Positions 54,228-58,350 of a DNA stretch of 64,000 bases are shown one piece after another (the first letter of the stretch is position 1; the number at the start of each line of letters is the position of its first letter). The notes below the pieces were generated by a model. It made no database searches. It was not told where the DNA came from and worked only from the letters and a program-made list of their open reading frames with translations. This DNA is from Salpingoeca rosetta (taxonomy: Eukaryota; Protista; Choanoflagellata), in assembly GCA_033442325.1 (NCBI GenBank), contig JAWQFM010000014.1, positions 1,263,201 through 1,327,200 on the forward strand, in the 5' to 3' direction. The position numbers were made by a program, and so were the translations under genes.

Positions 54228-57200
54228 TTAGGGAATCTGGTCCTCGGCGGACTTGACAAAGATGGAGATGGTGGCGGAGATGATCAGGAACACAAACGTG
54301 GCAACACCTGTAGATGACGTACAACGTCGACAATGTAACATATGTACATGTGAGCACGTGTGAAGTGGGGACAGCGCAGTTGACACGATGATGATGATGA
54401 TGATGATGATGATGATGATGATGATGATGATGATGATGATGATGATGATGATGATGATGATGATGATGATGATGATGATGATGATGATGATGATGATGAT
54501 GATGATGATGATGATGATGATGATGATGATGAGAGGAAGAAGCGATGGCATGGTGCGTGATAATGTGATGTTCACTTTGGTGCAAAAGGAAAGAAGAGGC
54601 GCTCCCCAGCGAATCCCACCATCCATCCACCAAACACGCGCACGCACGCACGCACCTAGGCCGCCAGCGTAGCCGAGGTCGCAGTCGCCGCGGTCAAAGC
54701 GCTTGGTGCTGCCGCAGAAGCTGGCGTCCTTGAGGCCGGCGCCAAAGAGGAACAGCGCAATCATCACGCATAGAGCTGTGCACAGCAAAAGCGTCAGCAA
54801 ACGACACGGTGAAGACCCATCACATCCATCGATACAAGTGAGGAACAACCACTGTAGGACGGTGGGATGAGCAAACACATCGCTGCACTGCACGCATGTA
54901 CACCCGGCTGCAAAGCCCACAAACTCTGCTGCACATGCTCAATGCCACTGCTCACTCACCAGAGAGGAAGAGAAGGCCAATTTGTGGGCGCTGTTGTGGT
55001 GAAGGACGTCATCACAGACACAGACACGTTTGGAAGGAAGAGGTGGTGTCAGTCGTGACAAGGCGGCTTGAGGATTGCACCAACACGTCAGCACGCACAC
55101 ACACACACATGCACACATGCACGCACCCCACAACATGGAATAGTCAGCGTACGGGACAACATCACATCAGCATCACGGCAGCCATGTTGTGTCCGTACGG
55201 TGAGGCCCTTGAAGGCGCAGCATGTGAAGAGGAATAAGACGAAGCAGAGCCATATGACCATCATGGCAAAGACGAAGAGACCGGCAGTGCCGCGCCTGTC
55301 ACAAATCAGCGTTTGAGTGGGGTTGCATGATTGTGTGTGTGTGTGTGTGTGTGTGTGTGTGTGTGTGTGTGTGTGTGTGTGTGTGTGTGTGTGTGTGTGT
55401 GTGTGTGTGTGTGTGTGTGTGTGTGAGGGATGTGGAAGTTAGTGGAGGAGTGAGACTGAGAGAGCAAGATACAGATAAATGCAAGCAAGACACCAAAAGT
55501 GACAACACATCCGCTCCTCTTACCCATTGACCCAAACGCTTGCAAGTGAACCCCTCAGCTTTTTTTTTTTTTTTTGCCATGACCACCAAACGCACAAAGA
55601 CTCGTCAGATGTGAACGAGTACGTACCAGTACTCAATGGGGATATCCTTGGGAGAGTGGCCATAGCGCTCGCAGGTATCCAGGTCGTTCTTGTCGTAGCA
55701 GACTGTGTGCCGGGTGATAGAAAGTGGTGGGGATGAAACGATGAAGGTACGAGGGACACGGTAGGTGAGATGTGAAGAAGAAGCTCGGCAAACAGACTGT
55801 TCATCACGCCAGCTCACACATCACGCTGGCTCACGACAACTCACACACAATACGTTTGCTCACAAAACAAAGAGGGGAAAAGCCAGGCACTCGACGTTCG
55901 CACGCCCAGCAAACAAGCTCAGCACAAAGAACACAGCGTGTGAGAACAAGGAGCTACAGCACGCACAGGAGACGATGCCAATGGCCTTGGAGTTGCCCGT
56001 CAGTCCAGAGGGGGTGGTGAGCCAGAAGGGGGAGGCGATGGCCACGGTTCCGAGCACGGCGGTGAGGAGAAGGAAGAACGAGTACACGACTGCAACATGC
56101 CAAACGAAAGGGGAGAACGTGGGCAAGGTGGGGGTTGAAAGGAGGCAATATGTGTGAATCAGTCTCGCGTATTCCCTTTGTGTCGAGTACATGTACTTGT
56201 ATCCCTGTGTGTTGTGTGTGTGTGTTTGGATGTTGCAATGCATATCACCCAACACACCAACGTCCCCCCCCCCCACCAACTTCACACACACACACACACA
56301 CACACACACACACACACACACACACACACACACACACACACACACACACACACACTCACTCACTCACTCACTCACTCACTCACTCACTCACTCTCTCTCT
56401 CTCTCTCTCTCTCTCTCTCTCTCTCTCTCTCTCTCTCTCTCTCTCTCTCTCTCCCTCGATTCCGCTTGATGCTCGTATGAGCATCCCCCCTCATCATTAT
56501 CATCATCACAAACGCACCGTACAAGCGCAAGTTGGGGCCCAACTTGAGTCTCACTTGCTCACGAGGAACCTGGCGATTACCACCGTTCACGCGCACCGCA
56601 CCGGCACTGGTGCCACCCACCCCCGAGCCAAATGCTTTGAGACCTGCGGGTGCAGCTCGCATGAGAAGCGACGCTGAGGAGGACTGGGTGCTGATGGCGT
56701 TTGTGTTGTTGTCGCTGAGGGTGTTGTCGTCAGTTGTTCCACTGGCTGCTGCATGCACCCGAAACACGGCCGTGTCGGGTTGCGCGTGCAGTTGTTGCTG
56801 CTGATCGTCGACAACGCTCTCGTACAACTCTGAATCGTTCGAGGAGTTCACCCACGACCCAAAGCCTGAGGCTGGATGGTCTTCAAAACCAGACACACCA
56901 TTGTCAGGTGCCATCCCTGCGCCTGCGCTGCGGGGAGCTGGCCTTGGGGGGAGCTGGGGAGCTGGCTGTGCGTTTGTGCGGGTGTTGCCGTACTGTACAC
57001 GACAGTTCAACTGAGAGACAAGCAAGAACAACAGTGGGGGTGGGTGTCTTTATGAGCGTGGACTTTAACGAAAGAGCGGGTGGAGCGTAGCATGTGCATG
57101 TACGAGCGCACACACACACACATACACACGCATGTATACACGCATACACACATACATACGTATACACACACACAGTCTGATTCTCACACATGCACACACG

Positions 57201-58350
57201 TGTTCACACACCAGCCTTACCGTGCGTGTCATGCCTTCTTGGTTGGACGACAGGTGCTCAAGTGCGGCCGTCAGATCCTTGCACGGCGGAACGAGAGGGT
57301 GGTTGTTGAGCTGATAATCGCCATTTGCGCTCTTTTGGAGGAGATGGTGCTCGACGACTTGGTCGTGGGCGACCTGCCAAAAGCAAAAGCCAACGGCGAT
57401 TCCAGCAATGTGGTGAGCATGACTGCGCTTTGTTTATGCACACACAACAGGATGCATACACACACATAACAGGATGCATCCACACACACACACACACACA
57501 CACACACACGCATAAACTAGAACACAGATACACACGCAGGCACACCCCTCCTTCATATTTACCATACCAGGCTGATGGCGACTTGGTTGTCGGCCTTGCT
57601 CCGGCGCACCACGTAATCACCAAAAGCACAATCATCGCGGTCGAGGAGGAGCACCTCGGCTTCTTCGCGCCCCATCAAGGGGATGTTGGGTGGTGGCAAT
57701 GCGCCATAACCATGCTGATGCCGCTGCAGTGGCGCTGCAGGAGCTTTTGGTGCGTCGGGGAGCGTCTGTTGCACAACGAGACGAAATAGAGATGAGGCAT
57801 GCGCAAGAATTGAGTGTGAGAGACATACCATCCCACCATGGAGGCAAGCACACGTGCGTGCAAGCATACGGACACACCCGGACACACACACACACACACA
57901 CGGACACACTTTGAGTTTGGCGATGATTGCATCCACCAGCTCAACGGGAACATCCATGTCGGGCACATCACCGCCTTCAGGAAGCCATGGGAAGTAAGCC
58001 ACATTCGAGGGGAGGTGGAACTTGGTTTCTGGCTCCACAAAGTCGTCGCACATCTTGACAAGGAAGAATGGTTTTTCTTGGTCGATGATGTAGCGCAGCT
58101 CTTCGTATGTGCTGAACTTGCTTGCCGTTTGCTGTCCGTATGTGCGTGTGCCCAGCAGGACAGCCATTTTGCACCCATGCAGCGACCGGATGACCGCCCT
58201 GGCAATGTCACCACCGGGAGCAATATCGCACAAGAACACACGCAAGCCGTGCGCCTGGAGCGCCTTTTCAAGCCCCCGCGCGGCATGCCGCGCCTCGCCA
58301 AAGCGGAGGGAGATGAAGACGTCAAAGTTGTGGGTGGTGGTGGGTGGCAT
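54228..58350 (-). CDS. TIR domain - SH2 domain - Pro/Tyr linker - LHFPL/claudin-like four-transmembrane protein (10 exons, 603 aa)
   Basis: Exons 58350-57910, 57765-57568, 57373-57221, 57010-56518, 56089-55967, 55702-55627, 55295-55199, 54990-54960, 54775-54656 and 54307-54228. All introns are GT-AG with matching phases; total 1812 nt. TIR: FDVFISLRFGEA...STYEELRY. SH2: MGREEAEVLL...GDYVVRRS...AISLV...VEHHLL...GMTRTLNCRV. Four-TM domain: AIASPFWL, C..C, IP..YW, FCGSTKRFDRGDCDLGYA. Confidence 0.85.
54387..54531. repeat. (ATG/CAT)n trinucleotide microsatellite in the last intron of the TIR-SH2-4TM gene
   Basis: Pure tandem atg run. Confidence 0.97.

Follow-up and report, generated by a model that had tools for sequence, protein, structure and literature searches.

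A probable recent chimera of a TIR-SH2 receptor and an LHFPL-like tetraspan in the choanoflagellate Salpingoeca rosetta

PTSG_05359 of the choanoflagellate Salpingoeca rosetta was analyzed in a stretch of 64,000 nt (hereafter the window; contig JAWQFM010000014.1 of assembly GCA_033442325.1, positions 1,263,201 to 1,327,200 of the forward strand), in which the gene occupies positions 58350..54228 of the minus strand and consists of 10 exons joined at GT..AG sites into 1812 nt encoding 603 aa. We assign a probability of about 0.6 to the reading that PTSG_05359 is a single, intact and recently formed chimera of a TIR-SH2 receptor and a tetraspan, whose product would be a membrane-anchored TIR recruited through phosphotyrosine (pTyr). 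A TIR-SH2 receptor gene appears to have received a ~2.7-kb copy of part of a tetraspan gene immediately before the transmembrane segment (TM) of the receptor, with an in-frame join within exon 4.

The tetraspan parent is PTSG_05212, a highly expressed, stand-alone tetraspan of 191 aa placed on the same contig (G000:C14, ~634.7-637.3 kb) at ~685 kb from PTSG_05359. Protein identity between the tetraspan half of PTSG_05359 and PTSG_05212 was 89%, and their introns were 92-96% identical. The segmental duplicate (53863..56546, minus strand, ~2.7 kb) extended, introns included, from inside PTSG_05212 exon 1 to ~365 nt beyond the stop codon (blastn of window 56546..53863 against L022 3683..6343, with 77-94% identity across exons, introns and 3' flank). 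Exons 5 to 10 of PTSG_05359 matched exons 2 to 7 of PTSG_05212 in size (123, 76, 97, 31, 120, and 80 nt, respectively) and every splice site was conserved. At the breakpoint, the last ~29 nt of exon 4, the donor site and the start of the intron matched the boundary between exon 1 and intron 1 of PTSG_05212 at 36 of 47 positions; this 47-nt alignment scored 44, whereas none of 1000 shuffles exceeded 26, and upstream of 56546 homology to the PTSG_05212 locus did not rise above that of shuffles. Since the break lies inside the first exon of the tetraspan, the start codon and promoter of the latter were lost, and the tetraspan half would thus lack any inherited start of its own; the N-terminal Met and first ~7 residues of PTSG_05212 are replaced in PTSG_05359 by a TIR-SH2-linker arm of 420 aa. 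Exon 4 (56518..57010, minus strand as all other exons; aa 265-428) contains in succession the C-terminal strand LNCRV of the SH2 domain, a low-complexity linker of ~150 aa, the motif MRAAPAGLKAF (56594-56626) and the ~29 nt contributed by PTSG_05212 exon 1. That this exon is chimeric and yet a continuous open frame is strong evidence for a genuine fusion at the DNA level.

The direction and age of the event were evaluated with P0157, a 194-aa stand-alone tetraspan orthologue (64% identical) of another organism, which served as the outgroup for polarising changes and is encoded by an intron-free contig corresponding to a spliced transcript (Logan SRR10674833; L026, 1118 nt; 70-654). P0157 shares with PTSG_05212 the start MASY.PSKSG.DLCLH, and because it is a stand-alone protein with the same N-terminus, the stand-alone tetraspan is taken as the ancestral state. 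For the pair formed by the tetraspan half of PTSG_05359 and PTSG_05212, the rate of synonymous substitution (dS) was 0.126 and the ratio of non-synonymous to synonymous rates (dN/dS) was 0.35. The fusion therefore appears to be recent and derived from duplication (dS about 0.13 to the parent) and was seen only in S. rosetta. It is not an ancestral module of the relatives of animals; a first-pass annotation of this DNA had suggested that it could be a Toll-independent innate-immune or sensory module in an animal relative. Microsatellites were present in introns 9, 6, and 4 of PTSG_05359, namely (ATC)n at 54387-54532 (146 nt), (CA)n at 55330-55425 and (GA)n-(GTGA)n-(GT)n at 56283-56450; these repeats are longer than in PTSG_05212, having expanded in the fused copy, and mask part of the intron homology.

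The closest TIR-SH2 paralogues were PTSG_02597 (728 aa; L025, G000:C4 ~548-553 kb), PTSG_03080 (860 aa; G000:C8 ~208 kb) and a gene on contig 9 (L023, G000:C9 1038-1046 kb) with many repeat units in its ectodomain. All three are type-II membrane receptors, in which an N-terminal cytoplasmic TIR is followed by SH2, a linker, one TM and extracellular LRR_5/BspA-like repeats (LRR, leucine-rich repeat). PTSG_05359 resembled these proteins in its TIR subfamily (53-66% identity), in its SH2 subfamily, characterized by a ...LEHLS.N.E.M.. tail, and in the cytoplasmic arm that both domains form, and it shared with the contig-9 gene the position of an intron after ...M[TS].T. It differed from them in the membrane part, a four-pass tetraspan with two short outer loops in contrast with one TM and a large BspA/LRR_5-like ectodomain; having only two short outer loops, PTSG_05359 presents no obvious ligand-binding ectodomain. 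In the TIR tree, PTSG_05359 grouped with the TIR-SH2-TM-LRR gene of contig 9 and with a copy on contig 30 (support 95/92), displaying the shortest branch of the group. A juxtamembrane motif, S.L.M[RK].AP.[GD][IL]K.F, was located ~20 residues ahead of the TM in PTSG_02597 (MRAAPAGIKAF) and in the contig-9 gene, and exon 4 of PTSG_05359 bears it as SLLMRAAPAGLKAF. The pattern search did not find this motif in PTSG_03080, and a shorter form (DAKMFAMEV) appeared in PTSG_02868, whose layout is TIR-TM-DUF5074-like repeats. Tyrosine motifs resembling SH2 ligands were also seen in the linkers, YEEI and VYDV in PTSG_02597 and LYESV, along with a PxxP stretch (PQLPPRPAPR), in exon 4 of PTSG_05359 (56518-57010); these motifs are not conserved, as the linker of the contig-9 paralogue is devoid of Tyr.

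The first-pass annotation had joined ten exons of the minus strand into one frame of 603 aa, with a junction at 57221|57010 (EGMTRT|LNCRVQYG). Both the frame and the junction were reproduced, and the frame equals the public model of PTSG_05359 (P0151, 597 aa; GCA_000188695.1, scaffold GL832966.1) apart from the six residues LNCRVQ, which are absent from the latter because acceptor 56992 is used for intron 3 instead of 57010. At the place of this junction PTSG_02597 reads ...SMTRTLQCRV... and the contig-9 paralogue reads ...TMSHT|intron|LQCRIEQ..., with its intron at the same place as intron 3 of PTSG_05359; the alignment showed a hydrophobic L.L-type strand at the same point in other SH2 domains of S. 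rosetta, and a stronger pyrimidine tract precedes 57010 than 56992. Given the agreement among paralogue readings, SH2 strand and pyrimidine tract, acceptor 57010 is better supported; 18 nt are probably missing from the public model at this point, unless it represents an alternative acceptor. An open frame alone proved to be weak evidence for the gene model, since 1400 other GT/GC-AG combinations within 12 nt stay open too. The model is backed independently by the public annotation, by the exon sizes and splice sites shared with PTSG_05212 and by the paralogue readings at the junction. The 603-aa variant was judged through its domains, the tests having been run on P0151 and on single exons.

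The SH2 domain extends over three exons. Exon 2 (57568..57765; aa 148-213) encodes a spacer and the first half of the domain (αA, βB, and βC), scoring 14.8 bits on its own, whereas the second half (βD to αB) is encoded by exon 3 (57221..57373; aa 214-264), which ends in ...EGMTRT, and the last strand lies at the start of exon 4. Pfam SH2 (PF00017) matched the whole protein with 22.5 bits and residues 150-300 with 25.6 bits, in both cases above the cut-off of 21. The AlphaFold2 (AF2) model of the domain (predicted local distance difference test, pLDDT, 78.8) displayed the fold formed by αA, a central β-sheet and αB, and the best 50 Foldseek matches were all SH2 domains, including those of SYK, ZAP-70, Src, Abl, and Grb2 (root-mean-square deviation ~2.7 Å over ~89 columns). 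When the domain was aligned with 13 further SH2 domains of S. rosetta and a paralogue, Arg201 (codon 57604-57606) fell in the invariant βB5 Arg column (FLVRES), and R180 (GREEAE, αA Arg) and H223 (VEHHLL, βD His) occupied in this alignment the usual columns of phosphotyrosine binding. The alignment with SYK was in agreement, with GDYVVRRS of PTSG_05359 against GLYLLRQS. The SH2 domain of the first-pass annotation, which had pointed to the βB Arg in GDYVVRRS, is thus borne out by profile, fold and invariant residue.

Pfam L_HMGIC_fpl (PF10242; claudin/PMP22 clan) matched the tetraspan half with 51.3-55.2 bits (E-value 2e-13 to 1.5e-14; cut-off 25.2), and the profile of the tetraspan family matched LHFPL4 chains in the Protein Data Bank (PDB; E 8e-5), the Cys pairs of both loops being aligned. 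Four TM segments were identified as hydropathy peaks (429-447, 500-518, 531-549, and 579-597), the first outer loop being long. They are distributed over six exons: exon 5 (55967..56089; DNA ~94% identical to the parent including flanking intron) encodes TM1 and the start of outer loop 1, exon 6 (55627..55702) the outer loop 1 with two Cys aligned to those of LHFPL4, exon 7 (55199..55295) TM2 and a short inner loop, as judged from hydropathy, exon 8 (54960..54990) the start of TM3, exon 9 (54656..54775) TM3 and outer loop 2 with two Cys (L_HMGIC_fpl 14.1 bits on this exon alone), and exon 10 (54228..54307) TM4 and the stop codon. Tetraspan topology is predicted to place the TIR-SH2 arm and the C-terminus in the cytoplasm. 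The arrangement proposed by the first-pass annotation, an LHFPL/claudin-like tetraspan with Cys-containing loops outside and TIR-SH2 inside, agrees with the Pfam match, the similarity to LHFPL4 and the hydropathy. Likeness to animal LHFPL2-5 thus comprises the four TM segments, two Cys per outer loop, the above-threshold Pfam match and the structure (TM-score of the Atlas model of the tetraspan against LHFPL2-5 clusters 0.85-0.88); the searches made returned no LHFPL protein that carries a signalling domain on the cytoplasmic side. With Toll-like receptors (TLR) the protein has in common that it is a membrane protein with a cytoplasmic TIR, but here the TIR is N-terminal, the chain crosses the membrane four times instead of once, an LRR ectodomain is missing and an SH2 is added; identity as a TLR was therefore rejected, the layout of N-terminal LRR, one TM and C-terminal TIR not being found. 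A more distant LHFPL-like tetraspan paralogue was detected ~20 kb past the end of the window (G000:C14:1347161-1347783; 45-54% identity on two exons, E 4e-4 and 9e-3).

Exon 1 (57910..58350; aa 1-147) contains the start codon and the entire TIR domain. On this exon alone, Pfam TIR_2 (PF13676) scored 29.8 bits (E 9e-7) with respect to a cut-off of 28, a borderline match, and PF13676 is included in the public precomputed annotation of PTSG_05359. The AF2 model, obtained with 40 relatives, reached a pLDDT of 85.4 and a predicted TM-score (pTM) of 0.83 and presented alternating strands and helices in a flavodoxin-like β/α fold of ~140 residues. Foldseek gave 67 matches in the PDB at E <= 1e-3, the listed 50 being all TIR domains, and the nearest solved structures were SARM1, RUN1, RPV1, TIR-1, and MAL. 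The profile of the TIR family matched Roq1 in the PDB at E 2e-4, as well as RPV1, RUN1, and SARM1, whereas the search of the PDB with the single sequence yielded nothing significant. Every residue invariant in the family was kept in PTSG_05359. Among them, Glu84 (STYEEL; codon 58099-58101) was invariant in 40 of 40 aligned members and aligned in the profile with the second Glu of WCLEEL of Roq1 and with the Glu of WCLDEL of RPV1. We take the Glu of this WC..EL position to be the catalytic residue, from what is established for RUN1 E100 and SARM1 E642, and the titles of the matched PDB structures name the mutants RUN1 E100A and SARM1 E642A. The αC-type Glu of NAD+-cleaving TIRs, to which the first-pass annotation had drawn attention, is therefore present in PTSG_05359 at the corresponding position.

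The family of this TIR comprises at least 35 matches in the 55.4-Mb genome of S. rosetta, and the consensus of the subfamily reads FISLRF..EA...VFLC...PG.DI...ILGT.TYG...FST.EEL...KPFFLVKMCD. Named choanoflagellate members of the subfamily belong to S. rosetta and Microstomoeca roanoka, and the other close relatives looked up occur on short contigs, environmental (eukaryote-like) or from run assemblies; none was found when 185,579 genomes of bacteria and archaea were scanned. Two TIR paralogues (G000:C17:478378-478791 and G000:C2:401878-402291) were nearly identical, with tree branches of 0 and 0.064, pointing to a further, very recent duplication in the family.

With the NAD+-cleaving TIRs (SARM1, Caenorhabditis elegans TIR-1, RUN1, RPV1, and Roq1) the domain shared the flavodoxin-like fold, the best structural and profile matches and the Glu at the catalytic position; it differed in lacking ARM/SAM or NB-LRR partners, in its ~20% sequence identity and in forming a distinct subfamily. 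PTSG_05359 was discarded as a SARM1 orthologue, the ARM-SAM-SAM-TIR architecture being absent and no ARM or SAM match having appeared in the domain scan. The TIR could alternatively be a protein-protein scaffold only, as in TLR, MAL, and MyD88, with no cleavage of NAD+ and with the SH2 recruiting it to phosphorylated partners, a possibility that overlaps with our preferred reading and that we regard as somewhat unlikely. The presence of the TIRs of MAL and TLR15 among the structural matches is in line with it, as are the weak similarity to NAD+-cleaving TIRs, evident from the null single-sequence search and the profile E-value, and the marginal PADLOC matches to bacterial defence TIRs. On the contrary, the invariance of Glu84 and its alignment with the catalytic Glu of Roq1 and RPV1 argue for cleavage, and the best structural matches, SARM1, RUN1, RPV1, and TIR-1, all cleave NAD+.

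Under the chimera reading, the product would be a four-pass membrane protein carrying a cytoplasmic TIR-SH2 arm on a flexible linker of ~150 residues. The tetraspan would serve as its membrane anchor, probably placing it in the surroundings or complex of the parent tetraspan, and the SH2 may dock on phosphotyrosine sites made by the large tyrosine-kinase repertoire of S. rosetta. Crowding after docking could lead to self-association of the TIR which, as Glu84 is kept at the catalytic position, may trigger NAD+ cleavage and not scaffolding alone. A phosphotyrosine-gated function of the TIR would be plausible, and the protein might have an immune or sensory role.

Several observations weigh against this reading. 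The TIR_2 score on the whole protein (25.9 bits) was borderline, just below the cut-off of 28. The N-terminal βA Trp usual in SH2 domains was not found in PTSG_05359, which has ...PNIPLM... there, as does PTSG_02597; this is a peculiarity of the subfamily and concerns no residue that defines binding or catalysis. At the locus the window and GCA_000188695.1 agree in every letter, so that both represent one arrangement and not independent assemblies. Expression of the fused gene was low: in the eight RNA-seq samples of Fairclough et al. (2013; PMC4054682, supplement 9) PTSG_05359 received 25, 58, 32, 14, 27, 35, 24, and 13 reads, about 1% of those of PTSG_05212 (1044-3233 reads; ~100-fold difference). 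Identical runs of up to 58 nt between both genes mean that some of these reads could have been cross-mapped. When amino acid changes were polarised with the outgroup, 14 fell on the fused copy vs. 1 on the parent, synonymous changes being 4 vs. 4; the ratio of non-synonymous to synonymous changes on the fused branch (14:4) equals the neutral expectation, in contrast with a constrained parent (1:4; P = 0.015), and both branches differed from each other (Fisher P = 0.033). Finally, the search for the same architecture, which the first-pass annotation had suggested as a check, returned among 5.8 billion proteins only PTSG_05359 itself and no orthologue; in the protein search, TIR plus SH2 at 400-1274 aa was shared only by PTSG_02597.

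Low read counts, a neutral fused branch, the absence of the architecture elsewhere and a nucleotide divergence in tetraspan exons (5.9%) that equals that of introns (6.0%) would all be expected if the chimera were an evolutionary by-product, real in the DNA and weakly transcribed, whose tetraspan half, and perhaps the gene as a whole, is either not yet or no longer selected for a function, the new gene drifting or heading for loss. We consider this unlikely. No indel was found in the 527 nt of tetraspan exons, as opposed to 13 events in 605 nt of aligned intron, and these 527 nt contained neither frameshifts nor stops; the chance of zero indels in the fused lineage was ~0.0035, an argument that is suggestive rather than decisive since microsatellite-rich introns may inflate the neutral indel rate. 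The tetraspan half had lost none of its ten internal splice sites, the four outer-loop Cys (two per loop) were kept in the fused copy, and the TIR, as described above, retained all family-invariant residues on the shortest branch of its clade. The ratio of PTSG_05359 reads to PTSG_05212 reads varied among the samples (chi-square, P = 6e-5), so that cross-mapping alone does not account for the counts. The evidence on whether PTSG_05359 is used is therefore mixed.

Transcription of PTSG_05359 as a single unit, including continuity across exon 4, would be expected from the structure of the locus. That the locus would instead be transcribed as two units, one for a soluble TIR-SH2 protein with its end in intron 3 or exon 4 and one for a separate tetraspan, with part of the linker, expressed from an internal promoter, could call on the in-frame ATG at 56914 (Met297) and on the TIR+SH2 proteins without TM that Richter et al. 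(2018; PMC6040629) list among the intracellular proteins of several choanoflagellates, but it is very unlikely, since the duplicate, with homology beginning at 56546 inside exon 1, excludes the promoter, 5' untranslated region and start codon of the parent, exon 4 unites the end of the receptor SH2, the juxtamembrane motif and the N-terminal remnant of the tetraspan in a single open frame, the public annotation (EVM, PASA, and RNA-seq of eight conditions) calls one gene, and the closest paralogues are all anchored to the membrane at the same position.

Downstream of PTSG_05359, no remnants of the displaced TM and LRR exons were found. A gene with DUF5074-like repeats is situated ~5 kb downstream on the same strand (48120-49400, minus), with a fragment at 44349-44599 (plus), and is separated from PTSG_05359 by a gene on the opposite strand (49745-52481). 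Its product resembled the ectodomain of the TIR-TM receptor PTSG_02868 (62.5% identity, E 1e-113) and has a hydrophobic N-terminal segment of its own and no TIR; it could be a relic of the shuffling of receptor modules at this locus.

Part of what is described here was already public. The statement of the first-pass annotation that no protein with this architecture had been described needs amending, as PTSG_05359 is listed with its three InterPro domains (TIR, SH2, and LHFPL) in supplement 9 of PMC4054682 and the TIR+SH2 combination was noted in PMC6040629. The choanoflagellate "Kinase TLRs", "Kinase TIRs" and TIR+SH2 proteins of the latter work resemble PTSG_05359 in joining a TIR directly to signalling domains of the tyrosine-kinase type; they differ in that neither a fusion with LHFPL nor a type-II receptor layout with N-terminal TIR is mentioned. 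A layout of transmembrane receptor with N-terminal TIR and SH2 was not described in the choanoflagellate TLR literature consulted, and searches of the available paper library for PTSG_05359 and for LHFPL together with choanoflagellates found nothing. What this work adds is the choice of acceptor 57010 over 56992, a reconstruction and dating of the fusion, the finding that constraint on the fused copy is relaxed and the recognition of the type-II TIR-SH2-TM-LRR family as parent.

It is conceivable, although doubtful, that S. rosetta possesses an undescribed class of "inverted" TIR receptors coupling surface recognition to a tyrosine-kinase and NAD+-cleaving TIR output, and that PTSG_05359 is a functional new member of this class with its sensing end swapped for an LHFPL tetraspan. 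If so, PTSG_05359 would plug a TIR-SH2 effector into a membrane complex organised by a tetraspan, and it would offer a natural case, open to genetic work, of domain swapping at the level of exons giving rise to new receptors for immunity or sensing; S. rosetta can be edited by CRISPR, which makes the idea testable. Being species-specific, weakly expressed and already annotated, the gene says little on the ancestral animal toolkit. It brings together TIR signalling, possibly NAD+-cleaving, phosphotyrosine signalling and an LHFPL membrane scaffold. Its clearer value is evolutionary, as the DNA itself shows which two parents gave rise to a new membrane protein of several domains, where they were joined and how old the join is, and the locus points to a small family of transmembrane receptors with an N-terminal TIR and an SH2 domain.

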